Source: Magallana gigas (taxonomy: Eukaryota). From it: a stretch of DNA of 64,000 bases. Below, one piece after another: positions 172 to 56,413 of the stretch. Location of the stretch: the NCBI RefSeq assembly GCF_963853765.1, contig NC_088856.1, forward strand, positions 14,322,001-14,386,000. Direction: 5' to 3'. Under the pieces are notes generated by a model. It was not told where the DNA came from, ran no database searches, and worked only from the letters and a program-made list of their open reading frames with translations. Each line of letters begins with the position of its first letter. Within the stretch, counting starts at the first letter, position 1. The position numbers and the translations under genes are program-made.

Positions 172-1794
172 AGAAGTAAGAAAGTCTGCAAATAAAACAA
201 CCGCCTATCAAGAAGAAAGCAGCAACTATTTCAAAACTACAATTGGATTTGCCATATGTCTTTCTTTCCTCTTTCTCGCTCTAATCATCTTTGTGATTCT
301 AAAAATAATAAAGTTCTTGAAGCAAAAATCAATTTGGTTTCAAAAAGGTACAGTTATATTATATCTTACTTACTAAAGTAATATTTGGACAATATGTGAT
401 CTTTATATGGTGTTTATACATATACTGATTTTAAAAGCTTCAATCATTTTTCTAAAATAGGTTTTTTTTTTAATTTTTAAGGACATAAATCAAAGGAAAA
501 CGCTTTAAACAAAGACGAGGAGTCTGAACTTACAGGCAAAGAAGAAGGAAAATCCAATATACGAAGATTACACGACTTGATTGTCCAGGGTACAAAACAA
601 GGGTTTACTCGTTTGATATGTGATTTCAATAAAGATGATCTGGAACAATTAAACGTACGGGGATTAAACTGCTTACATCTTGCTGCAAAAGGTGGTAATA
701 TTCAATTATTTAAAAGAATTCATAAATGCGGTGTAAGCATTGACACAAAAGCAACTGACGGAAGGAATGTTTTGCACATTGCTGCCCACCACGGGAACTA
801 TGCAATATGCGAGTACCTTTTGCAAAAACATAAGAACCTATACACGGACACTGACAGATATGCAATGAATCCTGCTCACTGGGCTGCACTTGCTGGAGAG
901 AAATCTATATTGGAGCTCTTCATGAAATATGGATGTGATCTAACTGAACTTACTCATCCATATAGAGAAAATATAGTTTTATTTGCCTGTATGGGAAAAA
1001 GTTTAGCTGTTTGCAAGTTTGTGGGATCAAACAAAAACATTTCACACCTTTTGCACGAAAAGAATAGAGAAGGATGGAGCTCTATACAATATGCAGCTAA
1101 AAGTGGAAATCTTGAGGTTTTTAAATATCTTGTTGATGAAGGTGTAGATATTGAAAACAAATCACAGAAAACTGGAAAGAATTGTCTACATACCGCATGT
1201 GAAAAGGGTCATTTGAAAATATGCGAGTATATATTGAAAACGAAACCCGGGCTTTTAACAGAACTAGACAAAAATATGCAACACGTAGGACATTTTGCTG
1301 CAAAAAGCGGGGACGTTGAAATACTGCAGCATTTGTTAGATCATTCCCTCGTCGATAACGCGTTCTTACAGAAACCAGCCACTGATAATATTCATCTACT
1401 GCATATCGCATGCAGGCATGCAAGATTTGATATGTGTCTTAAAATAGTGAAAGAGTTTCCTTTTATGATTCACGAAATCACAGAAAAAGGATGGAATGCT
1501 GCCCTATTTATCACTGAAAGAGCTGGTGCCGAAAACGAACGAATACAAATTTTGAAAACTTTAACTGATATATCATCAGAATCCCCTTTAAATGCGTATC
1601 ATGTTTCACGATCCGGAAAAACTATTTTGTTCAATGCATGCGTAAACCGGTCACCTAAACTGGTTCAATTTTTGTTAGAAAACTTTCCAGACTTACCAGA
1701 AATTGAAAAATCAATGGATCCAATAGAGTCAGCAAACTCAGAGGAGATAAAAGAAATTTTTAAAACACACTATCAAAAAAGTTACAAATGTTAA
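172..1794 (+). CDS. Receptor paralog A (5'-partial): stalk + TM exon and terminal ankyrin-repeat exon of a single-pass TM ankyrin protein
   Basis: Exon 172-347 (tgtacag|...AAAG|gtac, phase 2-1) encodes EVRKSANKTT...IGFAICLSFLFLALIIFVILKIIK. After intron 348-481, exon 482-1794 is in frame with ORF 577-1794 and holds about 10 ANK repeats (GLNCLHLAAKGGN, GRNVLHIAAHHGN, GKNCLHTACEKGH). Same exon phases as paralogs C and D. Ectodomain exons lie upstream of the window. Confidence 0.85.
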
Positions 1795-2386
1795 AGCAGC
1801 CTAGCCTCGTTTCCAGTATAAATGTTGAAACCTGTGGCTTTGTTGCTGCAGGATTCATTTTTAACAAGTAGATGTCCTTCCAAACACTTACGCATTCGGC
1901 GTAGACAACGTATATAAGATAAGGAATACGATTAAAGGCGATAAAAAAAACCGTAAGGACGTCCTTCTACAAATGTTAACAAATGAATCATTTATGAAGT
2001 AAATGAAAATTTTACCTTTGCAAAAACCTAAAAAAAAATCAGATGCTACATTTACCTGAAAACTCAAGTTTACCTAAAACTGAAGTCCTGCTCGAAATCT
2101 TTGTTGTTTTGTTCTCTATGTCTATAATGTCTGGTTTTATTATACTTTTTTTCTAAATGTATATATCCTTGACTGTAACATTATATAGTGTTAAAGTTGT
2201 TTCGTTTATATCTCTTGAAAGTGTGGTTTGCAGTGGTATATTCAAATTGTGTTTTTCTACTCCAAGTAATTTTGCGTCTTGACGAAGGAATAGGTTTTCC
2301 AAATTATTCGACAATTTTAATTGTTCATGTCATTAGCCAGTTCTTATGCTTTATATTTATCTTTAGTTTGGTTATAGTTTGTAAAA

Positions 2387-2537
2387 TCATGCGCAGATCC
2401 AGAGAGGTCGGGATGTCCAGACAATAACCCTACCCGCCTTTCAAAAAAATGATTTTTTTTTTATTCACATGGTAATTTTTTTTTAAAATAGGCCTCGGAC
2501 CCATGCCCGGGGAAACATGTCCCGGATCCGCGCATGA
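2387..2537. mobile_element. Short MITE
   Basis: Terminal inverted repeats TCATGCGCAGATCC ... GGATCCGCGCATGA around a non-coding core. Confidence 0.7.
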
Positions 2538-3666
2538 TAATAATGTACATACATCCATGTATATATTTATTGATGAATTTTATGTACTTGTTCTATAGTT
2601 TTAGATAATAAAGAAATATACATTTTAACAATATCTATTAATCATAAATTAAACTTGTAGAGCATGGTAATATAATTTATGATATTTGCATTTCAAGAGC
2701 CCTCTTAAAAATCTAGAATGTAGCTCAACTAATTATAAATGATATATCAAACCATTTTATTCAAACACATCATATATTGAATTGAGAAAGATTTCTTCGT
2801 CGGCATCATAGGAAACTGAAAAGAATTGACGTCTGCATACCGCATTCCGTCAACATCGTTGATCAACACAGCAAAATTATCTTGATCATGCGCAGCTATC
2901 AGTTTTCTCTAGAATTTAGAAGCAAAGTAAACTTATATTAACTTTATTAAACATATTTCGGGGACATATTTTGTACGAGATAATATTTGGAGTATAACAA
3001 ATGTAAACTGGCACAAAGTATACATTCTAATAAAAAAAAAAAAGAAAGGAACCCTGTTAATGGTATTATTCTGTGTGTAAAATGTCAAAGGCATACAATA
3101 TTCATTTTTTCTTTAAAGTCGTTTCTTCAAACGTAATCCTATAAAACTTTATTTTGTCAGACCGTCTTAAATGCACAATGGCAGCGCTCACCAGTACAAT
3201 AAAAAGTTAAGCAAAATGGGCAAAAATACACGATGATAACTAAAGTCGGCTTCCTTAGGTTTAAAATCTCCAGTTACTAGGTAGTAAACGTTGCCCAGAT
3301 CTGGGGCTCGTTTTATAAAGGGTCGTACGCCCAGAATTAGAGCTACGCCGGTGTAAATACGGGACTAGATCGAATATTAAACCGTTTCATTAAAACGCGC
3401 ATCTTTACCTACGACTAAAGTTAAGCCAAAATTTTACGTTCATCCACAGGTAATAGGTAGGCGTAAGTTCTAGGGTAAACATAAGTAAGAATATATATCA
3501 TGAAACGGCGATTGCATTTTATCACTAATGTAATTGAATTAAGTTATTGTCAGACATATATAGTTACTGAGAAAAAAAACTACTCATACTTTACCTTTTG
3601 AAATTTAAAAATCATCAGGTTTTTTTAATGCCATTTTTCTATTATATCCAGCAATTTTTGTGTATA

Positions 3667-3670
<4 letters not shown>

Positions 3671-3741
<71 letters not shown>

Positions 3742-3742
3742 T
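3671..3742. repeat. (TA)n microsatellite
   Basis: Direct reading. Confidence 0.95.
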
Positions 3743-5450: not shown

Positions 5451-5589
5451 ATCTTATAATGGAGATACATTTGTACTTAGAACATGCACCAATAAAAAAT
5501 TATGAAAGTATAAACATACAAATTTGAATGACCCAATATACAGACATATGGATGGACAGACAGATGTACAAACATACAGGGCAGATATG

Positions 5590-11423: not shown

Positions 11424-14400
11424 GCTGACTACGATTTTAATGTTATTCCTGTTGAAAAATGCCCAATGAGTGAGGAAGATTGGGACATGGCATCAGCTCG
11501 ACTAAAATGTAACAATACACATGGATATCATTGTGTACCTAATAAACAATTAACTTCTCTAATTGAATTCTGCTATCCGAAAGGATACAGGTTTCCTTTT
11601 GAATCAGGTTTGTATATCTTAATGGAGATATTTTCTTTAATCTTTTCATGAAATAGATTAAAACATTAAACTTGCGACACAAAAGCACTTTCGAAAAGCA
11701 CCTTACTAATAAAGTATCAGATACAAAATCATTCCACTTTCAAATTGATTTGTGTATAAATAATGTATTTTAAAATAACATACATTATTTTAGGCACTTG
11801 ATATATATCTGTCCTTACTATTCTTTGTACATTATCTTTGTTATTCTTAAACACTATTTTTTCTAAATCTATAATTTATTGAAAAGCAAGTATAATCTTC
11901 ACTTTCATAGTTTTAACTAAAATCTAAGACTTTTCAAGTTGCACACCACATTTAGGGATTAGCTTGTATAGATTCTAAGAATACTAAAACCTAATTTTCT
12001 TTTTAATTGACAGTTTGTTATTATCATTTTTCATGTATAACATAATGACGAGCTACAATACGCAAAAACGCCAAATGAACTGTTATTTCTACACTAAGTG
12101 ACAAATATGGCGTCAAAAAAGTTAGAGTGAGACGTAAACGTACACATGATATTTTATATATCTAATAACTGACCATCTTAACACCATCTTAGTTTTCTCC
12201 GACTCATATATTTCAAAGCATTTGATCTGCATGCAATATATAATTTCTTAATTGGAAAGGTATTTCCAAAAGCCGCGTTATCTGCACAGCAGATTAGTAC
12301 ATTTATATGTACATAACTGTCTGAAGAGCCAGGAATGGCGAAAACGTTTGCGGTTAATAGGATCAATTTGTGATTTTATTCTGGATATTTATTATTTTTA
12401 AATTATTTAAAACTGTGCCGATTTATTTTTTGTTGCATTGGGAAATTATATATATATAAATCACACTAAAATATTTATAATGAATTACGGATAAAAATAT
12501 AAAGCTATAAAACATATATGTATTGAAAAGTAAAATAAAGCTCTTGATTTGTAACTTACTATTAAAGTTTGTTTCTTTTACGATCTTCTCAAATATTCTT
12601 TGTCATGCTCTAAATAATGAAACAAAAATGTTGGATAATAGTAACGTGATTGTATTAAATGTTTTTCAAATGGATAATGAAGAAAATATTTAATTTTTAC
12701 ACGATTCCCTTTATACCAGAATTTACGAAAAAGTGATTAGTACATTTAATTATGTCATTATAATGTATAAAGCACAAAAATGCACGGTGAAATCATTTGC
12801 TAGATCTTGACCTGAAACAAGTCTATAGATACTTTTTTCATATATATGCGACAAAAATGATAAATTAAAGTCGATATCCAAATTCATCATTTTATCATTA
12901 TCAATAATCTTTAGCTATAAAAATATTATAATCATATTTAATGCGCGTTTCAAAGGCAACTGTTTAAAGCTATCCGCCAATGGTACTCTGAATCAAGTTC
13001 CTTGTGCTAACACATTCGATGATGATTGCCCAGAGAACCACTACTTCAGCGATAAAATATTCAACTGTAAGTATCCACTTCAAAACATCTTTTTTTTCAA
13101 GGAAAAAATTTAAACAAAATATTAAACAAAAATAAGCTTACGTCATATCTGCCAATTTATTTAATTCTTATATTCCTGTGCATTTCTATAGACCCAAAGT
13201 GTTTGATGATCAACAGAAGGCTCAACTCAAATGCTTTGAAGCTGATAATGAATGCATTTATTTGAGGTATTCTGACATTGACATAAAAGTCTACAATATT
13301 CTCAGTTGTGGAGTTTTCCTTTTTTCTTTCCAATCATGTTTATGGTGGACCATTTGTGACAAAACTTTGCAATATTTGTTTGAAATGCAGTTAATTTCCA
13401 CATTATACTAGATTTTTGCTTTTGAAAAATTTTAGAGTACTGAAAAACAAGCAATTTGAAGAAAACGTCACTACCACCAAAACATCTGTAAAAGACACTA
13501 GCAATCAATGTAGTAATATTACGACAGAAAGCAGCCCAACAGCAGTTGTCGTAGCTTTGGCTATTTTACTGGGCATATCTGTGTCTGCTTTACTGATTAC
13601 TTGTGTTTTTATTTGTTGCAAAAGGTTAAGACGATGTAATCAACTCAGAAACGGTACATTATCAAAAATATGTATATTTTATTTCAATGTAATATTTTCA
13701 CCCAAGGTTCATCTTGATAGTTAGATTTATTTATTTATTTTTGTTGGGGGGTGTCATTTTTTTAATAGCAGCACAGGCTGTGTCAAGATACAGTTCTGTA
13801 CCATGACAGGAAATATACCTTCTTTAGTTTCACCTGTTGGAATGTATTGACAGACTTTTTGATGTCAATCAAGTTATATAACTTTTATTTTTATGAGTAA
13901 AAGGTACAAAAATTGGTAGTTACAGTTTGTTACATATACCAGCGATGGCCCAGAGGAAACAGACTCAGTGCAAACCTTTATGGTCTATAAAAACTGTACA
14001 ATTAATCTATAGATTGAAGCAAAGGTATGAAGAATGTTAAATTTTTTCTAAATAAATGCAATAATTCATAGCTATGAAACTTTTTAAGAAAAGAAATTTG
14101 ATGTTATTTGTTATTGAAAAATATCTGAAATATCGGTATAAACCGATGAAAACCCAACGTTTTATTTTACATTTACAACAATTGCCCTAATAAAAAAAAT
14201 CTTTTTCAGACACTGTTCTACTACTAGACAGGTTTGACTTCGATAGTGACGGTAACAAGCAAGGAACTTCAAAAACAAACACACAATACAAAGAGCTGTC
14301 AGTTCAAACAAAACATTATAACTATGATGATGACAGCGTTTGAAAAGGACTTGTTTGTTGCCGTAATTAGCGAGGAAAATGACACAGGAAAAGATACTAT

Positions 14401-17118
14401 AGGAAATCTACACAACATAGTTATCCATCTTTACGAACAAGCATTTGAAATATTACGTTCGCAGTATGGTAAAGATAAATATGAATCAAAGAACTGAAAG
14501 AACTGAAAAGCGTTAAGCCTGGATAAAACTGTTAAAAATATCCCAAATGTTCTAAAAATATTTGTGAAGAATCATATTTGAATCTTGATTTGTTCGTTAT
14601 TGTAAAAATGCACTCACTCAGAAATCGGATATCACTTAGTACATAGTTAAAGAATACATAAATCTTTGAAATAATTAATGCATGCTGACGTGTTACAATG
14701 AAAACTAAATATAATGCTGATGACTTAAAAAAAATCAGCATCACGGCATTTCATAAAAAATCTATGTGAATCTTTATTTTTGAAGCATAAAATATTTTAT
14801 CTATTTGACTGTAAAGTCAAAATTTCCTTTTTACAATATAAACATGTTTTAAAATATCACGATTGTTTTGAAATTTTAGCAATTTATGGAAATGGAGAAG
14901 TAATAATCTTATAAGAGCATTGCTAGACTAACTGAGTTATTTTATTTTAAACAGATTTTGCTGGTGCACAGATAAACAGTATATGCTTCTTGCAACGAAA
15001 ATAAAGTAAAATAACAAAGCTCAGATGATAATTTAAATTTATTTATGGGGTTTCAGTTTGCTAATTTTCATTTCTTTGTTATTACATCTGATAAATCGTA
15101 AGCAATAAGTGAAGAAAACTTTTTTTTTAAAACTGGCAAATTACGGTAACAAAATAAAAAGCCAAATGTTTTGACAAAGTACGACAATAATAAGATCGTA
15201 TTACAGATATGCCTAGCAGGAAATGCCACTTAGATCTATTCTTCTAAATTTTAGCTTTGGTATTCGAACATCAGGTTCGCCCCTCTGCTCCAAATCTCAT
15301 GAAAAGATGGGCATAAACACCTCCAATATATAAACATTACTGGATGTTGGAATATTATTCGAAACGAAGACGCTTCTCATCAGTTTAAGTATTGGCTAGG
15401 CAGTCTCTTCTGTGGTATATTTTAGGGAATATCGTTGAATTTAATGACGTCTAGCTCATATCTCAACAGACGTGAAGTGTCGTGTTTATAGTAAGTTTTG
15501 TCAAAGGGTGGGGGGGGGGTGTCATTGACGTCTATGTAGGTGTCACAACAGCATTTCACCGTCAAAACATGGCTGAAGCAAAATAATTTCAAATTCTCCT
15601 TTGAATTTGGTGTAATTCCTGCCACGACTGTGACCGTTTTCTTTTATGAGATGAAAAAAATTATAAGATGTCTGACTATTCAAGTTTTGTAATCAAGCGA
15701 GGTCATTTTAATTTTTTTATGCGTAATGTTTTTAAGGGGTGAGAAGGTTTGGGCTTTATTTTCAAGCACATGTATCTTCGACGTAAACAAGTTCTCATGC
15801 CTTGCAAGATGCACCTATGTTTTTGCTGCTAAATTGTAAATGAAATGTTGTTTAAAAATATGTCAAGTAGATTTTTTCCTAGAAATTCGTTTTGAATGTA
15901 TAACTTGTATCTAAAGTAAGCATCATTGCTAAGAATATATAGTAAAATTTAATATTGTTTACATAGTGACACCTGCAATACATACGATCTCTGTCGGAAA
16001 GGCTCAAGATGTTGCGATTGGATGGAAGTACTGTTTTGGCAAGCGTATCAGAATACGTAACCTGAAAAATGACCTGTAGCCTTGTAATAGGGTACGGGTT
16101 CTTTTAGAGAACTCAAACCATTAAAATGGCAAGAAGTTTTATTTTATAAATATCAATATATCGGGTATAGATGCATTGATATTTTTTATTTGTAAATTTG
16201 ATAATTTCATCACATACTACAAAATTTCATTTAAAGATTTGAGATCTTACACTTTGCTTTGAATTATTTACTGTTATTAGATGTTTTATGTATGTATAAT
16301 TTGCCAAACTGAACATATATTAAATCATCAATTATGTTATGTTTGCCCAAGATGAATCGTCCTCTAAGCAATTTTATATGAAGTATCACTTTACAGCTTT
16401 TGTTACATATATCTGCTGTCGTATTTCAAGTAACTTGACAGTTATAAGTTTTGTTAATTATATTCAAATCATTTGTGCTGTTGGATCATAATCAAATTAT
16501 AGAACTCCAAAATATGAAGGAAACATAGTTTTGTTTGCATGTATCGGTGAAAGTATTGAAATTTGTAGGATGTAACAAACATATTGCTTCCCTATTTTAT
16601 GCAACAAATAGTGAAGGATGCAATTCCATTCAATATGCAGCCAAAAGTGGTAACCCCAAAGTATTCAAATATCTTTGTTACAAGGTGTGACTATTCATAA
16701 TATACCAAGGAGTTAAAATCCCACCACTGACGATATTAACATCCTTCACATTGTCTGTAGACACGCAAAGCTGATATATGTGTCAAAATAGCCGACATAT
16801 TTCCTGACCTGATAAACGAAATAACAGAGAGAGAGGATGGAATGCAGCTCTCTTTATCACTGATAAAGCAGGAGCAGAAAGAGAAAGAATTAATATCTTA
16901 CATTTCTTAGAAAAGCGTAAATTGAATGTTTACCATGTAACTAGATCAAGAAAAACTATATTGTAAAATGCATGTGTAAATCGGTCGAGAAAACTTGTGA
17001 AATATTCAGTAAGCCGTTATCCCGATTTATTGAATATATAAAAAAAACAATGGATCCTAGAACAGCAGGCAAATCTCGCGAGATTGAAGAGCTTTTTAAA
17101 CAACATATCGAGACATAA
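11424..17118 (+). pseudogene. Receptor paralog B, pseudogenised (ectodomain and TM exons plus decayed ankyrin exon)
   Basis: Exons 11424-11607, 12956-13066 (111 nt, as in C and D), 13192-13266 (75 nt versus 70 nt in C and D; a 5-bp CTCAA duplication gives a frameshift and TGA) and 13436-13653 (TM: AVVVALAILLGISVSALLITCVFICC). The ANK remnant is at 16490-17118. The signal-peptide exon was not located. Confidence 0.8.
16490..17118 (+). pseudogene. Decayed ankyrin terminal exon of paralog B
   Basis: Fragments TPKYEGNIVLFACIG, NSEGCNSIQYAAKSGNPKVFKYL, DDINILHIVCRHAK, GWNAALFITDKAGAERERINIL and RSRKTIL*NACVNRS align to A, C and D. It has several frameshifts and stops and lacks ANK repeats 1-3 and 6-7. 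Confidence 0.88.
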
Positions 17119-21735: not shown

Positions 21736-24222
21736 TTATTGATGTCCAACTATTTTTTGCCGATACTCATCAAGAAGTGATTTAATTTCAGTTGAATCTG
21801 TGGCAGTTTTAGCATCAATAGATCTTTCGAGACATAACAAATCAGGATAATTTTGTAATAGGTATTCGATTAATTTTGTAGACTGATTTGCACAAGCATT
21901 GTATAGAATGGTTTTTCCTGCTCTTGATGCATGATGAACGTCTAGGCCATGTTTATCAAGAAGTTTCAAAATTTCAATTCGCTTCAACTCGTTTTCAGCT
22001 CTCTCTGTTAAAAATAAAGCAGCATTCCAACCTTTCTCAGTGAGTTCAAGAACCAAATCATGAAGAATATCTAGTTTTTCGAATTCAATACACATGTCAA
22101 GCCTTGCGTATTTGCAGGCAATATGCAGAACGTTGACATTGTCTGAAGTGGCCTTTTTCCATAACGATTTATCTCTGTATTTTAACAATTCTTTAAGGAT
22201 ATTTGTATTACCACTCTTTGCCACAAAGTGACCGACATGTTTGTTATTCTTGTCCTTTTCTTGTATTAGGTCTGGACATTTTTGCAATATATATGCACAT
22301 ACGTCATTGAATCCTTTCTCACAAGCTGTATGTAAACAATTTTTCCCCGTTTTATGGGATTTGTTTTTAATATCAACGCCATTCTCGTAAAGAAACTTGA
22401 CTGCTTCGAGATTTCCATTTTTGGCTGCATACTGAATTGAATTCCAATTTTCTCTGTTTTTGGCGTGAAGTAAAGTAGCTAAATTTTCATTTTTTGCCAC
22501 AAATTTAAACACATCTAAACCCGTGTTCATACACGCAAACAATACAATGTTTTCTTCGTATTTACGAGTTTTATATGCTAAATCACAGCCATGGTTTGAC
22601 ATTAGTTCCAGAATGTTTACATGTCCGGCAAGGGCGGCCCAGTGTGCAGGATACATTTGGTTATTGTCTGTTTTCTCATACAATTCTTTCCTCTCAGTCA
22701 AAATGTACTCGCAAATATCATGATTCCCGTAATATGAGGCAATGTGCAGAATGTTGCGCCCATCTGTTGTCGTGGATGAGATATCATTACAAGCTTCATA
22801 AGTTGTCTTAAACGCATCCAAATTGCCCTCTTTAGCGGCAATATGTAAGGGATTAAATCCTCTACGGCCTAATTGTTTCCTTGCAGTTTCAACGGATGAT
22901 TGCTGTCTTCCTTCCATGATTCTTCGTCGAATGGCTGATATCGGATTCAATTCACTATGTCGACTACTTCGTGTCCTTGCTGCAGAAAATGATAACATAC
23001 TTCATTGCATTTATAAGTGTGTTCAAAATATAAGACGATATTTTACAAACAAACGAAATGGTCATTAGCCTTTACTGTCTACTGAAAAGAATAGTACTAT
23101 GTAAAAACATGGAACAATGCAAATATTTAAAGATGATTACAATTTCATTCATTATCTAAAGATAATTTTAAAGATATCTTAGCTTTATCTTATATCAAAG
23201 GTATCTTTAGAGGTCATACATTATTCAAAGCAACATCTATAATTAGTCAGCGGACAAGGATAAAAAAATAGGTGAGTTGCTAGCTAGATATGAAACGATG
23301 TTTGAATGTAGGTCATGCATTTCAAGAATTTATCGTATCAAATCTTATTTCGTGTTTTACTATGATGACAATATGGTCAGCATAACCCAGTACTAGCAAA
23401 TCATACCTGAATACCAAATCTTTTATTTATTTATTTTTTAACATTATCATATGCTTGCCTTTGAAGAAGTGGGAGATCAAGTATCGGTCGAGGTATACAC
23501 GTGTTAGTATTTAGTCAACATAAGAGTTTGTAAAGTTTGTAAGCCTTTAAGGAACATGATTACGAATTCGGTCAATTTTGTCTGTTTTTAATTTTACAGT
23601 GCTTCAATAAGGCATTCCTAATATTCAACCATAATTGAGTATCAGTCGTCAAGTTATAAGAGAGATACGAGCTCAATATTCTTTACTACGTAAATAAGCT
23701 CAGGTAGTGTTTTTGTCGACATTTTAAATGTTGCAAAGAAATTGCCAGGTTTAAACTGAAAATGAATGTTACAAACTCTAGGATCTGTTTTTTCATGTTC
23801 AAAACGAATTAGCAGATAGAAAAATCAGATTGAAAAAGTACTTTTACAAGAATTTATATAGACAAAAACATAACACGAGCCTTGTCTACATGACAAAGAA
23901 TTGCGAGTTCTTTACTTACATATAACTCTACGACTGACACTCAAACTTTGCTTGTTTGTTAGAAATGCATTACTGAAGCAGTGTAAACAATACAAATAGA
24001 AAAATAAAATTTGACTTAAATCGTTGGCCTTAACTGTTCTACTCACTCAGTGGTATATTTCCATCATTATAGGAATCTGATTCAGAAGACAACGTTTTAA
24101 CTTGTGGATCTTCAGAAGACGCAGGTGAATATTGAACAATGGGCTTACATGGCAGAGATTTGTGGTCTGCAAATAATACGTACATATTGTGAAATTCAAA
24201 AGAGGTATTTGAAGAAAAATAC

Positions 24223-24272
<50 letters not shown>

Positions 24273-34615: not shown

Positions 34616-34656
34616 ACTTCTTTCTACCAAGGAGGTTTGAGAGAGGTCGGAGATTT

Positions 34657-46432: not shown

Positions 46433-49400
46433 ATGGATTGTAGTCAATATTACATCACTATTTGCCTGGTAATTTTATCCACACTGACTTCGTCGGTAAG
46501 CAATAAATGATACACGGAGATGGTTAGAGAAAACTAAAAAAAAAACCGTGTACTTTAAAATTATGTATCTGTATATATTTGATCAAAGGACTATCAATTG
46601 ATGATGAATATGCAGATTGTGTGTTTATTAAATTTTGCAAAACCTATCAAGAATTTAAACTAACCTGCAGAAAGTCCACATCTAGAGCATATTAACTTGA
46701 AAGACTTCTCTGTTACGTTCTGCGTCAGAAACCTTATTCCAAAATCGACTCCCTTTCCAGTTTCCAGTTAACTGAACGTGCTTTCATTTGTATCTCTTTA
46801 TTTTGTCTATAAAGGAATAAATAAATAGATAAGTCTGCTTTGGTTACTTTACTGCCAGTGTGTAAAACTTTATTGTAGATCAATTTGCGTATTTGTTAAG
46901 TAAAAATCCCATTTCTTGCTTTGCTTTTTGTATGTTCATTATTCATAATTAACTATAAAGCAGAAAGGCATTCTCCAACTAAATCAATTATGGTGCGTAT
47001 AAACATGAAGCGTAATTTTAGAGTATAACATTTTTGTATGAATGATTTAAAACAGATATGTGTATAATTTAGAGATTAGTGAAAATATTTCTGAAACACG
47101 TTATGTATCTGTAAATACTTATCATACAATGCATTAATCCTGATTTTTTCTCAGAAAATATCATTCTTTGTAGATGTCCGAGTACGCATTCCAAATATTT
47201 TCAGTTAAACATTGTCCTAGTAGTGAAGAAGGTTGGGGAATGGCATCCTCTCGATTAGGATGTAACAGTACACATGGATATCAGTGTGTTCCTAATAAAC
47301 ATCTGACTTCTCTCATTGAGTTTTGTTACCCAAGGGGTGTCAATATCCTGTTTGAAAAAGGTTTGAAACATTCATTTTAATATGACCTTTAAATTTGTTG
47401 AATGGGATTGGTTAAATTAAAAAAAAATTATAAGCTAGTAGGACAGCATTTTAAGCCCATTCTATCAATTTCGATCCGTTTAATTTCAAATGGTTTTTTG
47501 AACTCAGGTTTTCTATATCGTTGAGGTTAATTTGAAAACATAACCATAATATGTTTTTGACATAATCAATTTCAGCTACAAAAAAGTGCATACCAAATTG
47601 CAATGTTCAGTAATATACTGCTAACATTAGATTATGTCACAAAAACGTTAACGAAATACTATCATATATATAGTATACTTGATAATATTGTTAGGATGTC
47701 GAAAGCACGTGGAACTAAATATTGTTCTGAATAAAATATAGATTGTTTTATATTTATTTTAAATTTGTATCATAGTGACGTAAAATCAAAAATCAAGCAA
47801 TTGATCCAGTCAAATTAACAATGACATTCACTAGTTCACCAAATCTTACATAATCTGCAAAATCGTTCTCTAACTGAAAAAGGTATCACTGACCAAAGGT
47901 AATAGAAAGGCCGTGTGAGAGAATTGTCTGGTAAATAGATAAGAAACCGAGATATATATATATAATGTATATACATTTACTTCAGATAAATAAAAAAAAA
48001 ATCTTATCAAAAAATTCGAAATACCTAGTTTGAAAGAACTATATATGATAAGACTTAAAGTTTGCCCCCATAATTCGCCATTTTTTTAAGTGTTTCGGGT
48101 ACAATAAAATGTTAACTAATTTTTTAGAAGAGTTGATATAAAATATATTTTTCATCTATTTATTTGATTTATTTGCACTCGCTGGCAGTATATGACGTCA
48201 GAAGTGACGCCATTTCTATAATTCAATCAATATTAGCCCAAAATTGACATTTTTCTTATCTATTTACGAATGGGAAATATAGAGCGCATGCTTAAACAAG
48301 GAAATTTTTTGGTCACTAATAGTCTTGGCTAGATACATCTCTGATTAAAATATTTTATTTGTTCAAGAATGCGCTCTATGTTTTCGGAAAGGAAAAACTG
48401 CTCGAAAACAAGCTGTTTACGCTAAAAATGCAAAAATGGCGGGAAAAGGTTGTCTTTACAATGGCATATTTACAAATTGTGGGCACTTGAATCAAAGTGA
48501 ATATTATGTAAACACATCACATACATATCTGTACTAAGAAAACAAAGAATGATAGTAAAATGATGTATTCATCTTAGGGGGCCATTTTAGGCCCTTATCA
48601 TATATAGTCCTTTAAAGTGAACATTTTGGGTTATAGATGACAGTGTAAAAAAAACATGTCTCCCAGAAACGGCATCATTTTATGAATTTGAACACCACCC
48701 TTTTTATTCGACATCAGTAATAGGGTTGTGTTGTATGCCTGTTCACCGTTATTATATTATTTGTCTTTATGAAGGGAATTGCCTAGAATTGGCTGATGAT
48801 GGAATTCTAAATCATGTTCCTTGCAACAAAATGTTTGAGTTCGGGTGTCCAGACAAATTTTATTTAAGCAACGAAATATATAAATGTAAGCAATTTTGTT
48901 TTGGTATAACTTTTCAAAGTTAATCTCACGATTTTTGCCATGTTTTTTGTTACTTTTTTGGCACTATTGGACGTGATGTGTTTCATAACATATTTAACAA
49001 TCCTTCAAAGTATGCCAGTTTATTTTTAATGGAAGTTAAAACGGCAGAAAAATAAAAAATAAATTATTTGTAAATATTTGATGCAGACTAGATAATAATC
49101 TAATTATCATATTTTTATATCAAATCTATTTCCTTCGTTTCTAGATCCAAGTTGCCTTGCAATTAATACAACGCTGAAATGTTTTTATGCCGACTTCAAT
49201 TGCATTTACTCCAAGTTAGTGTATTTCTCATTACTCGGCAAATTGTGTTTCTACGATTATATAGGAGCTCTCATGATTTGCGATGGTATATGATTTTTAA
49301 CACACAACCAGTTGGATAAAAATCATATACCATCGCAAATCATGAGAGATTCTTTTAATCGCATGCTTAACCACAAGTTAAACCTCAATCTTTTGTTAAA

Positions 49401-52400
49401 CCTCAATTTTTCTGTAAACATAATTGTGAGCATGGAAAAAAGTTCCTTGAAGATTAGCAAACAAACATTTCATTTTGTGGTATATTTTTATCAATTTATA
49501 AAAAAAAAACACCTGAACCAGCTCTAAATGCTGCACATTTATAACTCTACGCTTTTCAATTGAATTATTTTGTTACTTTTTCAATCTACGTCAATAGTCT
49601 GCATAAAGCTACTTAATGTTAAATTATGACGTCATGTGGCGTTAGAACACATAGTGGAATATCAAAAATTTATCCCATGAGTAATATCCACCGTATATTG
49701 AGATAAACATGTGATAATGGACAATATCTTGCAAAAAGTAAACATTTATCCGATGATAAAAAACATGACCAATTTAATGTCTGATAACATTATTAACGTG
49801 AATACAAAATTGATTCTTAGAGTGAATGCATGCAGCAATTCTAATTTCTGGAGAGTCAGACGGAGAGTTAATATGTTTTCATTTTAAAATAGAATATTTT
49901 GAGCAAATATGTTTCATTAAAAATAATATTAAAAACTCTATTTTTTATAAATCATATTTTTTTGGTTCTTCTTGACCAGATCTATGATAAACCAAACCAG
50001 ATATATATTAAACCAAACTAGAGTTATGATAAACGAAACATGCGAAGAAAGCCTTATTTGTGGAATGAAAAATAGCCTCCTCAACTCGTGCAATGTTACG
50101 GCTATTGTGATGGCTGTGATATTTGGTATAATTTCTTTGATACTGGCCGTTTTGCTAGTGGTATTCATCAAGAGAAGAAACGTTACAATCAAAAGAAAAA
50201 AAGGTAAAGACGTGTATTTACATTTTGTGTTTGCTTTAACTAAATTCAATAGTGTCATATTATCATCGTTTCTGTAGTTTATCTTTATGAAAAGCAATAG
50301 GGCAATGTACGAATCGCCTTCTGTCATAGTAGTATTATATATAACATATACCATATTCATATTATCTTTTATTAATGTTTAGGCTTACAAGATTTGGAAA
50401 ACGGTATGTACGTAATTCATTTCGTTCAACATCATTATGCTATAATTACATTTAGTGTATAATTCCCCTTCTGTTTACAGGGAAATCTGTGACGTTCATT
50501 TTTAATAGCTCACCAGCCCTGATCAGGGAGTATGAGTATAAGTAAACATTATCAGGCTTTTGAATACATTTATTATTGTACTGAGATCATATGAACCGTT
50601 CAAAGTTATGCAACCAATTTGATATGAACTTATAAAAATGGTAGATGAATCATATCTATTCGTTAATAAAACAAAAATATACTTCTCGACAAAGTCTATG
50701 GTATTTTTTTTAGCAGCGGAAACAAACTAAATAACATGTAAATACACGTATGCCTGTTCCATCTTTTATTCATATCCCTGCAAAAAAGAGTATATAATGG
50801 CTTTAAAGCGATACAAAAATATGTCATGCAATTAAAAACATCAATATAAAAATGAATATTAATCTTTCGAAAGTATTTTTTTAAAATTCCTTCATTCTAA
50901 TTTAAGTCTTGATAGTCACTGTCAAGAACTAAAGTGTTTTTAAGGTGGTACGGGGCATCTCTTTATATTCATGTTTGAATTTGAATTAAAGTACATTATA
51001 ATCAAAATACTCTCAGCAGTTTAAATTTAAAATTTTACAATATTTAACCAAAAATGAGTTTTAAATGTTTAATGTTTTGGAAAAGTAAAACTTTAAAAAT
51101 CCCCAGCAAGAACTCATGACTTACAGATTCGAAGTGAACCCTCTAACCCACTGGTTTTCGCTGTTAGGTGACAATTTATGGAAAGAAACTATAAAATGAC
51201 ATTTAATTTGCAATTGATTGTTTGTTTTGATAATTAGAACGTCACAACTTAGAGGTGGCCCATACTAACTTAACACCATCGTTTCAAGTAATCATTATGC
51301 ATGTTTTGGTTTTTTAATCACAGATGAGTAAAAGTAATTGCATGTTTTGTTAGAAGCATTAATCCTCCACAACACGATGCATTTTAGTGAAAATTTATGT
51401 TTCTTCATATTCGCGTAAAGTATTAAGGATTAAGAAAAACAAGAGATGTTTTTAAAACACGTATGCCCCCTTATGAAAATGCTATGGAAACATCTGCGAA
51501 GAACATGAACGGAAACTGCAAATAATGGAAACTTTCGAATTCCATGGGGCATAACTGTGTCAAAAAATGCTTTATTGTTCCCCAAAAAGCTGGATTGTAT
51601 TTAAAATTAAACTTGACCTAGATATCATTATGATAAAACTGTATACAAAATTCCATTCCAATATGTGCATCCTCTGAAAAGAAAATGAACGGAAACTGCA
51701 AATTATCTGAATTTTTCTACGTCCAAGGGGCTTAACTCTGTCGAAAATTGCTCAATCGTACCCATTACTGCCTGACGGGTCAAATACAGTACAGAGGTTA
51801 AGCAAACCGATGTGTACACGTGAGAACACTAAGTCATCAGTTTTTGTAACGGCGAATTTCGAGTAGCGTTGACAAAAAGGACTGTATTACGTAAATGAAA
51901 TAACCTTCAATGTTTACTGGAGTTGGTATAGTTTGTTCGTATACCCAGTCTGTTCTCAATGACTAGCACATCTTTATTACACAGTTAGTGTGCAGTAAAT
52001 GCCAATATGACTGTATTAAGAAACTATCCTCACAAGCAATGTGTTTATTTTTATGTCTATTTTTGTAGGAGAAAGCCATCCTCTTCAAGAAGTGAGATTT
52101 GAACAATCGGAGATAACTATTGAACCAAACGAAGAAAGAAATGGTAACAGAGCAGTTAAAAAAAGAAGCTATTCTTCATTTTCAATAATTACAATATAAA
52201 TATTACCAAAAGATTTGATGCTAAAACCACATGCATATATATTCTCATTGCTGTGGACTCATTAAAAATCGTAGGGGCGAATTTTCATGGTTTGTATAAA
52301 ATTCACAGGTTCGAGGTTCGATAATTTCGTGTATCCTCTTATACGTACAAAAGGAAATATGACTTTAAATCCTGATTTATTAATTTGCGGTGGATGTATA

Positions 52401-54595
52401 TTCAAGGATGAGGGATACCAACGAATTCCACGAAAATTGAGCCACCACAAAATCTATTGATTTTACAGTATACCTCTGTATTTTTCTATGTAAAATTATA
52501 ACGAATGTACCTACATTTCATTCATCAATGTACTATTTCATCTAGATAGCCTTTACCGTTAAAGTGTTCGTTCTATTTGCCCAGGGTTAATAGTCATCGT
52601 AACTATTTACCAGCAACATTCGATTTCCCTTGCTTTTATGTCGGAACCCCAATCAAGATATCACAGTCGCTACCTCTAAACTCTTACTTGTTCACCATAA
52701 AAAAAACTCAGCATCACCGATAAATAATTTTTTTGTTAAAAACGAATACTTATACATGTATACTTGCATTGAAGACATAAGCCAATAAATTCTCCTGCTC
52801 GATAGCAACTACTTCCCTAGCCTCGGCTTTGCCTTTGGAAACAGCGACAATACATAAATTTTATATGTCAAACAAACATCAATATGAATATAAATATTAG
52901 GTAATAGTTGCTGTTAAGGGGGTAAACTTCCTATTGCTAGTAAATGGGGAGATAATATAAATTTTATCTCTTGCAGACAATGTACATGCGTTGCCTCCGC
53001 AACATATTAGTCAACCTCAAAACGCTGCGGATCAATTACCAATATCTTTAGTTGCAGGTGATTTTTGAACATTTCAATATATGATACATAAATTTAAAGG
53101 GCCCCTCTGAATTAATGGATAAAAGTTTACAAAGCATTTCAGAGAATTTTGCTTTGACTTTGACCTGTAACTTAGAAATTTTTCTAACTGGCATAAAACT
53201 TTAAGTCCAATCTCATTACCCGTTACATTATATAACGCATGTTTTGTTCCTCTGAGCAAGATTAAGCAAATGGGATTGACTTGGTTCAAAGTCACTGCAC
53301 ACACTTTACAGAAAAGCTCTACTTATGTGAAGTATGAGCCAAGTTAGGCTATGTGAAGTATACATAACATATTCAATATCATTGCCTACCCTTTGGCCAA
53401 ATTAAGGCACCCTGTGGTTGAAGTATGAACCAAATTCGACCAAGGAGAAAGAAGATACGCTACGGATAAGGATTTTTCTTACCATTCTGATATGACTTCA
53501 CATTTTACCTTGAAACTTGATTTAAGGTCACTGCACACCCTTTACCCAAAGGCACTCTGTGGGTGAAGTATGCGCCAATATGGGTCAAAGGGAGAGCAGA
53601 TATGCTCCGGACAAGAGATCTCAGTCGGACAGACAGACGGACGGACGGTTGGACGGACCGATAAACATCACTTTAGGTCGCCAGCAGGGTGGGGCTTTAA
53701 TAATTCGACCTAAAAGGACACTAGTATATCAAAATACGCCGGTAAAGTTAGACAGCTGGTCAATGATAAATACCATGAAAAATTTGAAGAGAGAATAATT
53801 CAATGTCGAGATGTTTTGTATATACCATAGTTTTTACATTTTGTTTTAAAATTGCAAAATGTTGACAATGTTTTGTTATTACATTAACATCCGAACAATG
53901 ATTTGTAAAGGATGGGATGTTTGGGTTTTTTTTAGACGAAATGCGTCTTATCCAAGTAGCGAATTTTAAGTTATGCTGAAACAGCGTTGTAAATTAATAT
54001 CAGTAATGCAGTAAAATAACCTCTAATGTTTACATGATTTGGTATTCTTTGTTCGTATACCCAGGTCTGTTTTCAATGACTTGCACTATAAGCGTGCAGA
54101 TACGACTGTGTGACTGTATTAAGAAAAATTAACATCACAAAAAAATGTGTTAAATATGTTTATTTAAGCAGGAGAAAGCCATCCTCTTCAAGAAATGAAT
54201 TCTGAACACATGGAAATATCTACTGTGTCAAACAAAGAAAGAGATGGTAAAAGAGCAGTTTAAATAAGTAGCTATTTTTCAATTTCGTAAATTCCAATGT
54301 TAANNNNNNNNNNNNNNNNNNNNNNNNNNNNNNNNNNNNNNNNNNNNNNNNNNNNNNNNNNNNNNNNNNNNNNNNNNNNNNNNNNNNNNNNNNNNNNNNN
54401 NNNNNNNNNNNNNNNNNNNNNNNNNNNNNNNNNNNTAAGCGCTTTCATTTTCATCTTCAGATGTTTTCAACTAACCTAGTTGTAAAACATCTGAAGATGA
54501 AAATGAAAGCGCTTATGTTTTACTCGGACTTTGTGTTTTTATTCATTTAAGTTTTCTATATTTTATCCGATCACTGTAACTTTTTCCTGGATTTA

Positions 54596-54681
<86 letters not shown>

Positions 54682-55037
54682 TAAGCACAAACATTGCAAT
54701 AACTCTCAAATTGACATATACCTGCCCATAGTGAATGATACTGACATATATATAAAGCACAGGGAAATATATATATATATATTACTGAGTATACCTCTGT
54801 ATTTTTATGTAATATTACGATGAATAAACTTTGCTATTTCATCTAGATAGCCTTCACCGTTAAAAATTGTTCGTTCTATTTGCCCAGGGTTAATAGTCAT
54901 CGTAACTATTTACCAGCAACATTCGATTTACCTTGCTTTTATGTCGGAACTCCTATCAAGATATCAAAGTTGCTACCTCTAAACTGTTACTTGTTTACCA
55001 TTAATAAAAACTCAGCATCGCCGATAAATAAAGGTGT

Positions 55038-55069
<32 letters not shown>

Positions 55070-56413
55070 AAAACAAAATACTTATTTACTTGCATTGAGG
55101 ACATTAGAAAATGTATTGTCCCCCTCGATAGCAACTTTTTCCCTTTGGAAACAGTTGCTGTAGATGGGGTAAACTTTTTATTGCTAGTGAATGGGTGGAT
55201 AATATATATTTTATTTCTTGCAGACATTGTATTGCCTCCGCAGCATATCAGCCAACCTCAAAACTCGCATCAATTACGAACATCTATAGTTACTGGTGAT
55301 TTTCCAACGTTTCAATATTTGATACATAAATTCGATAAGCATTCACTTGAAGAAGTTGATTCCAATGGGTTCAATTGTTTACATTCCGCTGCAAAAGGCG
55401 GTAATTTGAGCATTTTCAAAAGGATATGCAATATGGGAGTTTCCGTTGAGAAAAAAACAAACGATGGATCAAATATCTTGCACATTGCGGCACAACACGG
55501 ATGTTACCCAATTTGTGAATATATTTTAGAAAACTATGCAGCTTTGTTTTCTCTAAAAGACAACCTTGGTATGAATCCTGCACACTATGCAGCAAATGCT
55601 GGTCAATATCATATTCTTGATCTCATGTTGAAACAAGGTTGTGATTTATTTGCCGAAGATGAGAAAAATAACGAAAATATAGTTCATTTGGCGTGTATGG
55701 TAGGAAGCTTGGAAGTGTGCCAATTTGTAAAGGCTAACAAAAATCTGGAGAAACTACTGCATGCTAAAAACGGCGGAGGTTGGAATTCTATTCAGTATGC
55801 GACAAAAAATGGACATCTTGATATAGTGAAATTTCTTCTCGAGAATGGCGTTGATGTTAAAAACAAATCCAAAAAAATCGGCAAAAATTGTCTTCACACA
55901 GCATGTGAGTTTGGCAAACATGAAATATGCGAGTATATCATAAGTAAAGCACCAAACCTTATAACCGATACCGACTCTAGCGGACAACATGCGGGACATT
56001 ACGCAGCAAAGAATGGACATACTGATATACTACAGCTGTTGATAAACGTCGATAAATATGCCATGCAAAGACCATCTCATGACAAAATAAATATCCTCCA
56101 TGTCGCGTGCGAAAATGCACATTATGATATGGTTGTGAAAATTGCCAAGGTTTTTCCGTTTATGGTAAAGGAAATTACAGAGAAAGGTTGGAATGCAGCA
56201 CTTTTCATCACCGATAAAGCTGATGCAGAAGAAGAAAGAATCAAGATATTGAAACATCTCCTTGATCACGGCCTTGATGTATATCGTGTATCAAAGTCAG
56301 GAAAAACTATTCTCGTGAATGCACGCAAAAACAACTTAAAAGATATTGAACAGTACTTGTCACAACAGTTTCCGAACTTAATAGGTTTAAGGAGACAAAT
56401 TTCATTTCAATAA
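46433..56413 (+). CDS. Receptor paralog D, complete: signal peptide - Cys-rich ectodomain - stalk - TM - micro-exon linker - about 10 ankyrin repeats (about 671-698 aa)
   Basis: Exons 46433-46495 (MDCSQYYITICLVILSTLTSS), 47174-47360, 48775-48885, 49145-49214, 49980-50203 (TM AIVMAVIFGIISLILAVLLVVFI), 50383-50403, 52069-52143, optional 52977-53057, 54172-54246 and 55224-56413. All GT-AG with compatible phases; exons 2-4 have the same lengths as in C (187/111/70). Confidence 0.85.
48034..48611. mobile_element. TTAA-type MITE in intron 2 of D
   Basis: Left AAGAACTATATATGATAAGAC..AAAGTTTGCCCC; right GGGGCCATTTTAGGCCCTTATCATATATAGTCCT|ttaa. Confidence 0.65.
50944..51269. mobile_element. TTAA-flanked MITE with internal tRNA-like segment
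   Basis: ttaa|GGTGGTACGGGGCATCTC ... GAGGTGGCCCATACTAAC|ttaa. The core at about 51105-51160 (GAACTCATGACTTACAGATTCGAAGTGAACCCTCTAACCCACTG) resembles a reverse-strand tRNA. Confidence 0.6.
52251..52470. mobile_element. Tc1/mariner-type MITE
   Basis: CTGTGGACTCATTAAAAATCGT...TTTTCATGG ... CCACGAAAATTGAGCC...TTTTACAG|ta. Similar to the 19565 element and absent from the duplicated downstream intron copy. Confidence 0.55.
53095..53705 (+). mobile_element. Helentron/HINE-like element truncating the duplicated ankyrin-exon copy
   Basis: TTTAAGGTCACTGCACACCC...GTGAAGTATGAGCCA repeats, GACA/GACG microsatellite and a terminal GGTCGCC.GCAG.G.GGGGC..TAATAA motif. A related element lies at about 51440-51770. 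Confidence 0.6.
54304..54435. other. Assembly gap (132 N)
   Basis: Run of N. Confidence 1.
54436..54515. repeat. Near-perfect 80-bp palindrome (fold-back element) abutting the gap
   Basis: TAAGCGCTTTCATTTTCATCTTCAGATGTTTT-CAACTA acc TAGTTG-TAAAACATCTGAAGATGAAAATGAAAGCGCTTA. Confidence 0.9.
54598..54677. repeat. (TA)n microsatellite
   Basis: Direct reading. Others: (GA)n about 25531-25564, (TTG)n about 55036-55068, (GA)n about 57751-57796. Confidence 0.95.

Follow-up and report, generated by a model that had tools for sequence, protein, structure and literature searches.

Genes at the locus

The window, meaning the whole 64-kb stretch of DNA from the Pacific oyster, Magallana (Crassostrea) gigas, that was analysed, holds a tandem cluster in which three genes are intact (A; C, which is inverted; and D) and one, B, is a pseudogene. 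Using the three long ankyrin ORFs as tblastn queries, we located four copies of the ankyrin exon, at 577-1791 (+), ~16430-17100 (+, broken), 21739-22998 (-) and 55224-56410 (+). Each ectodomain exon was found in three copies by tblastx and blastn, at ~11.4-13.3 kb (+), 30.6-28.7 kb (-) and 47.2-49.2 kb (+). Exon reconstruction yielded a common plan of a signal exon, exons of 187, 111 and 70 nt, an exon for stalk and transmembrane (TM) helix, phase-1 linker cassettes and a single ankyrin exon of ~1.2 kb. An earlier note on this DNA had described four paralogs on one exon and phase plan, arisen by tandem duplication and including an inverted copy and a pseudogene, and all of this is present at the locus. 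RefSeq models already exist for D (LOC117682385), for C (LOC105333226) and for an A-like gene (LOC105333239).

Gene A in the window begins exactly at the acceptor of its stalk+TM exon and its 5' exons lie outside:

172..347, +, gene A (LOC105333239-like) stalk+TM exon, 176 nt, phase 2-1; AG acceptor before 172, GT donor after 347
482..1794, +, gene A last exon, 1313 nt, juxtamembrane linker and ankyrin array; open frame; Pfam Ank_2 E=2e-43; matches P0019

The first of these exons matches aa 150-208 of the transcript-derived protein P0019 (645 aa), which comes from a 2914-nt Logan contig, i.e. a spliced mRNA. Since the stalk+TM exon splices straight to the 1313-nt last exon, gene A has no separate linker exon, a deviation from the common plan; in B, exons 2 and 4 are altered in length.

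Copy B retains the following parts:

11424..11607, +, pseudogene B ectodomain exon 2, 184 nt instead of 187, still open; AG/GT splice sites; 62 aa align to P0064 at 93.5% identity
12956..13066, +, pseudogene B ectodomain exon 3, 111 nt
13192..13266, +, pseudogene B ectodomain exon 4, 75 nt (70 nt in the common plan); frame shift, then premature stop
13436..13653, +, pseudogene B stalk+TM exon, frame uninterrupted within the exon; 76-83% identity with intact paralogs
14209..14563, +, pseudogene B start of linker/ankyrin exon; frameshift near 14340, stops near 14500 (tblastn with P0068, P0064, P0066)
16426..17115, +, pseudogene B remainder of ankyrin exon; many stops and frameshifts

The additional length of exon 4 shifts the frame into a stop, and ~1.9 kb of unrelated DNA (~14560-16430) splits the ankyrin exon; a search for a signal exon of B found none. 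With its changed exon lengths, frameshifts, stops and interrupted ankyrin exon, B is a pseudogene.

Gene C lies on the reverse strand:

32006..32056, -, gene C (LOC105333226) signal-peptide exon, 51 nt
30381..30567, -, gene C ectodomain exon 2, 187 nt, phase 0-1
30017..30127, -, gene C ectodomain exon 3, 111 nt, phase 1-1
28728..28797, -, gene C ectodomain exon 4, 70 nt, phase 1-2
28132..28376, -, gene C stalk+TM exon, 245 nt, phase 2-1; TM helix aa 192-210
24047..24166, -, gene C linker exon, 120 nt, phase 1-1
21736..22979, -, gene C ankyrin exon, 1244 nt with stop; Pfam Ank_2 E=2.6e-39

Gene D is accompanied by additional linker cassettes, a duplicated piece of its ankyrin exon and an assembly gap:

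46433..46495, +, gene D (LOC117682385) signal-peptide exon, 63 nt
47174..47360, +, gene D ectodomain exon 2, 187 nt, phase 0-1
48775..48885, +, gene D ectodomain exon 3, 111 nt, phase 1-1
49145..49214, +, gene D ectodomain exon 4, 70 nt, phase 1-2
49980..50203, +, gene D stalk+TM exon, 224 nt, phase 2-1; TM helix aa 189-207
50383..50403, +, gene D optional 21-nt linker cassette, phase 1-1; in P0008; joints 50201>50381 and 50402>52068
52069..52143, +, gene D optional 75-nt linker cassette, phase 1-1; joints to 54168/54171 and directly to 55223
52978..53094 (approx.), +, duplicated start of ankyrin exon; acceptor kept, in-frame stop (alignment A3)
54169..54246, +, gene D optional 78-nt linker cassette, phase 1-1; contigs of X1 and X2 show joint 54245>55223
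54304..54435, no strand, assembly gap of 132 N, left unfilled, inside the last intron of gene D (54246 to 55224)
55224..56413, +, gene D ankyrin exon, 1190 nt with stop; Pfam Ank_2 E=2.2e-56; contig cover at 12-35x word depth

As the earlier note had stated, C and D are complete open genes: C is open for 675 aa and 95.4% identical to XP_011434393.1, while the translation of D agrees with RefSeq XP_034305641.1 in 665 of 665 residues and every one of its introns is GT-AG.

Transcripts and splicing

The predicted junctions were checked in sequencing runs, and the order of TM exon, linkers and ankyrin exon was found with GT..AG joints in contigs from two studies. The joint from the stalk+TM exon of D to the next exon is supported by contigs from two runs and by a single raw read, and three of the GT..AG joints also agree with single polyA RNA reads; runs X1 and X2, of low read depth, were taken as RNA from their spliced contigs. 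Alternative splicing of D varies the length of the juxtamembrane linker. The 78-nt cassette is a paralog of the 75-nt cassette and a product of intragenic duplication. The same gene carries a duplicated start of the ankyrin exon, which had been interpreted as a decoy-type exon. The duplicate exists, but no read or contig in the four (low-depth) runs splices into it, and its use as a decoy is therefore unsupported.

In D an assembly gap separates the last linker exon from the ankyrin exon, which might suggest that the architecture is an artefact of annotation, with the ectodomain/TM exons and the ankyrin exon belonging to separate genes or with a misjoin hidden in the gap. This is barely conceivable, as spliced GT..AG contigs from two studies (and two runs for the first joint) connect 54245 to 55223, across the gap-bearing intron, and 52142 to 55223, and the flanks of the gap are collinear with the older copy of the intragenic duplication. 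Moreover, full-length mRNAs of paralogs (P0019, P0294 and P0296) hold both the ectodomain/TM and the ankyrin parts on Logan contigs of 2.3-2.9 kb.

Protein architecture and the ectodomain

The intact genes encode type-I membrane proteins of ~650-675 aa, composed of a signal peptide, a 120-residue ectodomain, a stalk, one TM helix, a linker and an ankyrin array. The topology is indicated by a hydrophobic signal at the N-terminus, the single TM helix, a stalk rich in N-glycosylation sites (6-8 N-X-S/T outside versus 2 inside in D and C) and a basic cytoplasmic flank, a Lys/Arg-rich segment after the helix. The linker is unconserved, with ~90 low-complexity residues encoded by symmetric phase-1 cassette exons, and is followed by an ankyrin array of ~360 residues from a single exon. 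Pfam finds ankyrin families alone; its Ank models recognise the tandem 33-residue repeats, with Ank_2 matched in A, C and D at the E-values listed above. The protein layout put forward in the earlier note, from signal and 10-Cys ectodomain through one TM helix to a cytoplasmic ankyrin array, is real, and its exons are spliced as predicted. Among the paralogs the ectodomain is the best-conserved part, at 55-63% identity compared with 47-59% for the ankyrin array.

Ten cysteines are invariant or nearly so in the alignments of 18 and of 34 ectodomains (A1 and A2). No Pfam family was found for the ectodomain with matches scanned up to E=10, in line with the earlier observation that it has no EGF or LNR pattern. 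The PDB contains no sequence relative of the ectodomain and no solved chain matching its modelled fold. The AF2 model is mixed beta/alpha (pLDDT 88.7, pTM 0.82) and is matched at TM 0.85-0.91 by ESM Atlas models of mollusc clusters, some of them combining nSTAND3 with Ank. The Frizzled-type cysteine-rich domain also has ten cysteines, and one Atlas cluster is automatically named 'FZ domain-containing'. This candidate was rejected, as there was no Fz match at E up to 10 and the model is mixed beta/alpha whereas Fz is mainly helical. The PAN/Apple domain was rejected as well, since its helix packed on a five-stranded sheet with characteristic disulfides is not what the ectodomain displays.

An oyster superfamily with a constant ectodomain

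A profile built from the ectodomain retrieved 730 representative protein clusters, and all matches whose source was looked up were from oysters. According to Pfam scoring, ectodomain and TM helix precede nSTAND3-ankyrin, Roc-COR-ankyrin, HEPN(-nSTAND3-ankyrin), PARP14-like or Ig modules, and the TM helix follows the ectodomain in every class inspected. The search for copy number and partner domains proposed in the earlier note showed that the ectodomain is not peculiar to this ankyrin family: the domain heads hundreds of oyster proteins with other modules. Judged by sequence, ectodomain and TM helix are the constant module of a large, receptor-like oyster superfamily. Genes A, C and D have its defining features, ten conserved cysteines in an ectodomain of ~120 aa, followed by stalk and single TM helix, and because the ectodomain is shared with hundreds of oyster proteins, we place them as its ankyrin-only branch.

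A close comparison is with the ectodomain-TM-Roc-COR- and nSTAND3-ankyrin proteins (e.g. P0144, P0165, P0261 and P0211), which have a homologous ectodomain (E down to 1e-36 against the profile), the same stalk and TM layout and a C-terminal ankyrin array. These relatives carry a nucleotide-driven switch between membrane and ankyrins, whereas the cluster genes do not: in A, C and D Pfam detects neither a STAND NTPase (NACHT, NB-ARC, nSTAND), present in ectodomain-sharing relatives, nor the Roc GTPase and COR tandem, present in P0141, P0144 and P0165. The closest counterpart of the cluster genes' ankyrin array is found at the C-terminus of the Roc-COR-ankyrin members, where the array aligns end to end with that of gene D at 32% identity over 363 aa. 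The ankyrin-only subfamily is kept as intact genes in Crassostrea, Saccostrea and Ostrea.

Possible function

The best overall explanation, and in our view a probable one, is that the cluster encodes ankyrin-only oyster surface proteins which would serve sensing, recruitment and innate-immune or cell-death signalling. The ectodomain may bind a conserved extracellular cue or partner, the ankyrin solenoid would recruit cytosolic proteins to the membrane, and the proteins could act as sensors, co-receptors or regulators in signalling of the innate-immune or cell-death type. The link to immunity and cell death is taken from the domains of the sister architectures, and the putative immune role of the cluster genes is one of guilt by association; A, C and D themselves have no domain diagnostic of immunity and ankyrin repeats are generic. 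The earlier proposal of a birth-and-death immune receptor family therefore stands in part. Duplication, inversion and pseudogene formation agree with it, whereas immunity enters by association only and the ectodomain, being best conserved rather than hypervariable, is unlike a diversifying recognition receptor.

The conserved ectodomain, the missing immune-specific domain and the Ig or NHL modules of some relatives, typical of adhesion proteins, would suit a non-immune surface role in adhesion, larval settlement, gamete or tissue recognition or sensing, with the ankyrins tethering to cytoskeleton or channels as in classical ankyrin-binding systems. We consider this rather unlikely, given that most sister architectures bear STAND NTPases, Roc-COR, HEPN or PARP14-like modules and that the expansion is lineage-specific and includes pseudogenes. 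The shared ectodomain and the collinearity of the gene D array with the Roc-COR-ankyrin array are also what would be expected if the ankyrin-only genes were cut-down Roc-COR-ankyrin (or STAND-ankyrin) receptors, putative decoys or dominant-negative regulators without the nucleotide switch. Such proteins would compete for the same ligand or the same ankyrin-binding partner. The intact subfamily in three oyster genera fits an independent function as well, and we regard a cut-down origin as unlikely.

A Notch-like mechanism, in which ligand binding would lead to a cut in or close to the membrane and set the ankyrin domain free to act in nucleus or cytosol, has its sole parallel in the overall layout, a single-pass protein whose intracellular ankyrin array follows a long unstructured juxtamembrane linker; Pfam finds none of the EGF, LNR, NOD, RAM or PEST elements of Notch in the cluster genes, and this mechanism is highly improbable. 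An extension of the preferred explanation is offered tentatively, as a possibility: the ectodomain might be a new fold and the shared sensor of oyster-specific, membrane-anchored immune receptors of STAND, ROCO, HEPN and PARP type, with the ankyrin-only genes as co-receptors or brakes. The members would then do at the cell surface what NLR-like machines do in the cytosol of other animals, and the ankyrin-only proteins might pair with switch-bearing members via the common ectodomain or ankyrin module.

Oysters meet a dense microbial exposure by innate immunity alone and have huge expansions of unexplained receptor-like genes. This locus is a clean, compact and expressed representative of a family whose one small extracellular domain is wired to many intracellular outputs, among them a bare ankyrin scaffold as well as STAND ATPase, Roc-COR GTPase, HEPN RNase and PARP14-like modules. 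Should the ectodomain prove to be a ligand sensor, NLR-type and LRRK-type switches would be directly under the control of an extracellular signal, an arrangement of which, to our knowledge, model animals offer no example. For ectodomain expression and crystallisation, ligand search and fishing for cytosolic partners, the ankyrin-only genes are the simplest of the superfamily to work with. Furthermore, RefSeq uses the names 'latrotoxin-like', 'ankyrin-3' and 'phosphatase 6 regulatory subunit', misleading labels that will send enrichment analyses of oyster disease transcriptomes astray.

Comparison with known systems

Notch, too, crosses the membrane once in type-I orientation and carries ankyrin repeats inside the cell, seven of them compared with the ~360-residue array of the cluster genes. 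RefSeq names in use for the family include 'alpha-latrocrustotoxin-Lt1a-like' and 'alpha-latrotoxin-Lhe1a', yet ankyrin repeats are the only feature shared with latrotoxins. The large N-terminal toxin body and the latrotoxin C-terminal domain are lacking, and the cluster proteins are membrane-anchored and of 640-675 aa, with signal peptide, Cys-rich ectodomain and TM helix. The latrotoxin name looks like a by-product of automatic naming.

The designation as an undescribed family holds insofar as a literature search by gene id and key words found no functional paper on these genes and the ectodomain has no Pfam family; it fails in that the genes are RefSeq models, that the ectodomain is so widespread in oysters and that a similar oyster design has been mentioned by Kaur, Iyer, Burroughs and Aravind 2021 (eLife, PMC8195603). 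In passing, these authors described an oyster receptor-like expansion with a constant cysteine-rich extracellular domain, a TM helix, a DED, an NCOA6-clade TRADD-N and a variable C-terminus. Among the variable intracellular modules they name STAND NTPases, HEPN and ankyrins, and they interpret the expansion as immune or apoptotic. Their cysteine-rich domain has no name, model or alignment in the paper, and its identity with the present ectodomain is unproven. DED and TRADD-N gave no Pfam match in A, C or D, nor in 21 longer family members scanned one by one, and, in contrast to that expansion, the cluster genes comprise linker and ankyrins without DED, TRADD-N, NTPase or effector. Nevertheless, both are oyster-specific, both place a constant cysteine-rich ectodomain before one TM helix, and their partner modules overlap.

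Organization of the gene cluster

Copies A-D make up a genuine cluster shaped by gene birth and death; it is expressed and belongs to a lineage-specific family of membrane proteins. The G+C content is 32% across the window and there is a single run of 132 N (54304-54435). In a six-frame ORF list of the window, the only entries were some retroelement ORFs and three long ORFs with ankyrin repeats, in agreement with the earlier note, according to which the ORF track exposes only isolated ankyrin ORFs. Using the three long ORFs as tblastn queries, we located a fourth, degraded ankyrin copy at ~16.4-17.1 kb, and self-comparison of the window at the DNA and protein levels revealed each Cys-rich exon in three copies. 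When the D ankyrin exon was searched against a protein database, a Crassostrea (Magallana) gigas RefSeq protein of 665 aa matched with 100% identity; numerous relatives, 640-720 aa long, were found in C. gigas, C. angulata, C. virginica, Saccostrea and Ostrea. Genes A, C and D correspond to LOC105333239, LOC105333226 and LOC117682385, respectively. Their automatic RefSeq names, among them “alpha-latrocrustotoxin-Lt1a-like”, “ankyrin-3” and “putative ankyrin repeat protein RF_0381”, mirror the ankyrin repeats only and are misleading.

The splice sites of gene D were fitted so that the spliced coding sequence translates exactly into the RefSeq protein (XP_034305641.1); all introns are GT-AG.

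Exons of gene D
46433-46495, plus strand: exon of 63 nt, splice fit to the RefSeq protein
47174-47360, plus strand: exon of 187 nt, phase 0-1, splice fit
48775-48885, plus strand: exon of 111 nt, phase 1-1, splice fit
49145-49214, plus strand: exon of 70 nt, phase 1-2, splice fit
49980-50203, plus strand: exon of 224 nt, phase 2-1, splice fit
50383-50403, plus strand: linker cassette of 21 nt, other isoform
52069-52143, plus strand: exon of 75 nt, phase 1-1, splice fit
54169-54246, plus strand: exon of 78 nt, phase 1-1, splice fit
55224-56413, plus strand: exon of 1190 nt, splice fit

Gene C, on the minus strand, follows the plan of D with exons of 51, 187, 111, 70, 245, 120 and 1244 nt, and its frame is open over 675 aa with 95.4% identity to XP_011434393.1. 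Both genes are thus complete and open, as previously reconstructed. The C allele (21736-32056, minus strand) differs from the older RefSeq XP_011434393.1 at 31 of 675 residues; as read from the match segments, the differences fall mostly in the signal peptide, stalk, transmembrane (TM) helix and linker, with approximately three in the ectodomain core and three in the ankyrin array. The C intron upstream of the linker exon carries a perfect-looking 130-bp tandem duplication (24377-24636, 99% identity).

Only the 3' part of gene A lies in the window: it begins with the stalk and TM exon, whose acceptor is exactly at 172, and this exon is spliced straight to a last exon of 1313 nt. Pseudogene B retains exons 2-5, its exon 4 measuring 75 nt instead of 70, so that the spliced frame hits a stop. 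The B ankyrin exon is frameshifted, contains many stops and is interrupted by ~1.9 kb of unrelated sequence, and no signal exon was found in 1800-11430. The exon plan proposed for the paralogs was accurate, with two small corrections: A lacks a separate linker exon and exon 2 of B is 184 nt long.

The interval between C and D contains, on the minus strand (36213-39548), broken ORFs belonging to a BEL/Pao-type LTR retrotransposon; one matches the Pao retrotransposon peptidase (Peptidase_A17, E=2.5e-29) and the neighbouring ORFs are interrupted. Upstream of C and adjoining the retroelement are degenerate tandem and inverted repeats (33650-35950, 65-85% identity, unit ~180-450 bp). One interspersed repeat (19134-20186, 23585-24024, 30603-31045 and 40764-41006; 67-77% identity, both orientations) is located in the introns and flanks of B, C and D, and its copies could be mediators of rearrangements in the cluster. 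Self-blastn also detected tandem repeats of ~75 bp at 61319-61937 (copies 85-91% identical).

Splicing of gene D and its paralogs

Gene D contains an intragenic tandem duplication of ~2.1 kb (51898-53094 matches 54014-55332 at 75-81% identity), which gave rise to another linker cassette, used alternatively, and to a duplicate of the beginning of the ankyrin exon that carries a stop. The sequence gap follows the donor of the 78-nt cassette after 58 nt, and a further 788 nt separate it from the acceptor of the ankyrin exon downstream; hence it is intronic and the frame is unaffected. Both gap flanks match the older duplicate copy, with order and orientation kept.

For region 49950-55949, RNA evidence came from contigs of two Logan sets that stem from separate studies (X1 and X2) and from the raw reads of two polyA RNA-seq runs. 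The contigs contained GT..AG joints 50201>50381, 50402>52068 and 52142>54168, the last with a NAGNAG variant at 54171, where the acceptor choice (54169 or 54172) varies between runs. Joints 52142>55223 and 54245>55223, likewise GT..AG, both span the gap-bearing intron. Three contig joints were backed by single raw reads, and in the raw-read exon coverage the first mate was on the minus strand, the pattern that a standard stranded library should give for mRNA from the plus strand. The spliced contigs rule out separate genes as well as a misjoin at the gap. That the gene model is an annotation artefact is unlikely, since spliced contigs join the cassettes to the ankyrin exon.

An 805-nt contig reaches 527 nt upstream of the D TM exon, a stretch which, judged from its length alone, fits the four upstream coding exons and a 5' UTR. 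Contigs of 2.3-2.9 kb, whose only possible origin is spliced mRNA, encode complete ectodomain-TM-ankyrin proteins of the paralogs: P0019 for gene A, and P0294 and P0296 for C-like copies. Together with the D joints, these contigs demonstrate that the ectodomain exons do splice to the ankyrin exon, against the possibility that the two are never joined. The earlier note had also invoked “decoy-type” exons. The duplicated stop-bearing ankyrin-exon start (~52978-53094) retains its acceptor, yet zero joints into it were present in the two contig sets and two raw polyA runs, and the decoy reading found no support.

Protein topology and the ectodomain superfamily

D and C possess an N-terminal hydrophobic signal and a single strong TM helix, which spans aa 189-207 in D and 192-210 in C and is followed by a Lys/Arg-rich stretch, with 6-8 N-X-S/T sequons on the N-terminal side versus 2 on the much longer C-terminal side. 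The signal, the single helix with its Lys/Arg-rich flank and the sequon bias fit a type-I protein whose Cys-rich domain is extracellular. Identity between paralogs is 55-63% in the ectodomain, 47-59% in the ankyrin array and only 15-23% in the stalk, TM helix and linker. Thus the ectodomain, as the best conserved part, is a constant module and not a hypervariable one. At the ~50-60% protein identity between paralogs, synonymous sites are saturated. The ectodomain gave noise only against Pfam (E up to 10), as did its profile against PDB sequences.

Word-indexed searches with just the ectodomain as query retrieved no more than 26 and 13 proteins, which made an exhaustive profile search necessary. 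In a set of 1.84 billion representative proteins, the profile matched 730 clusters at E <=0.001, of which 335 at <=1e-10. Inspection covered the matches ranking above the weaker 580; all those whose source was looked up came from oysters (Crassostrea/Magallana, Saccostrea, Ostrea), and the ectodomain may still occur outside Ostreidae. Pfam scans of the longer profile matches revealed the following outputs.

Outputs behind the ectodomain, stalk and TM helix
ankyrin alone
nSTAND3 and a long ankyrin array
Roc-COR with or without ankyrin
HEPN_DZIP3-nSTAND3-ankyrin
PARP14-like RRM/KH-macro-PARP body
Ig domains with Roc-COR or NHL
scramblase or ApoL, in single cases

With the ectodomain and TM helix in common and the outputs varied, the cluster represents one variant, with ankyrin as its sole output, of a receptor-like superfamily built by domain shuffling. 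The D ankyrin array aligned over its full length with the C-terminal array of Roc-COR-ankyrin members (28.7-32% over 341-363 aa) and aligned worse with nSTAND3 members. In addition, two ectodomain-less proteins, P0098 (C. virginica LOC111110570) and P0009 (Saccostrea cucullata), carry the same, collinear ankyrin module of ~350 residues (35-37% identity) behind unrelated N-terminal regions, so the ankyrin array is a shuffled unit too. Of the proposed new receptor family, the membrane architecture proved real, but it is a branch of a larger oyster superfamily and its genes are already in RefSeq.

Possible function and relation to known systems

In our model, the ectodomain would bind a conserved extracellular cue or pair with other ectodomains, the ankyrin solenoid would bring in cytosolic partners, and the alternatively spliced phase-1 cassettes may merely alter the length of a flexible tether. 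The biological setting would likely be signalling of the innate-immune or cell-death type, for which the sister architectures seem to be designed. The immune role suggested in the earlier note is thus favoured by association, and the conservation of the ectodomain, unlike that of an arms-race recognition surface, speaks against it. A non-immune role in adhesion or sensing is a reasonable alternative, as is that of a decoy or regulator relative to the switch-bearing paralogs. Notch-like signalling by cleavage appears unlikely. The cluster would gain in interest should the ectodomain prove to be a sensor that membrane-anchored STAND and ROCO receptors share.

No paper was found on these gene ids, and key words (oyster, ankyrin, transmembrane, ROCO, nSTAND3) retrieved no functional study of the genes. 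In our literature search, only Kaur et al. 2021 (eLife, PMC8195603) touches a module of this kind; the literature thus mentions a broadly similar design, though without naming, modelling or testing it. That work describes a C. virginica expansion of about 50 proteins, whose constant N-terminal region comprises a cysteine-rich extracellular domain, a TM helix and then DED and an NCOA6-type TRADD-N, followed by variable C-terminal modules (among them Death-like domains, STAND NTPases, HEPN RNases, AIG GTPases and ankyrins). An outside trigger by pathogens, or even transmissible tumour cells, was proposed. DED and TRADD-N belong to those proteins and are absent from A, C and D. The partner domains overlap strongly with those behind the ectodomain of the cluster and its relatives, and for this reason the cysteine-rich module of Kaur et al. 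is probably the ectodomain described here.
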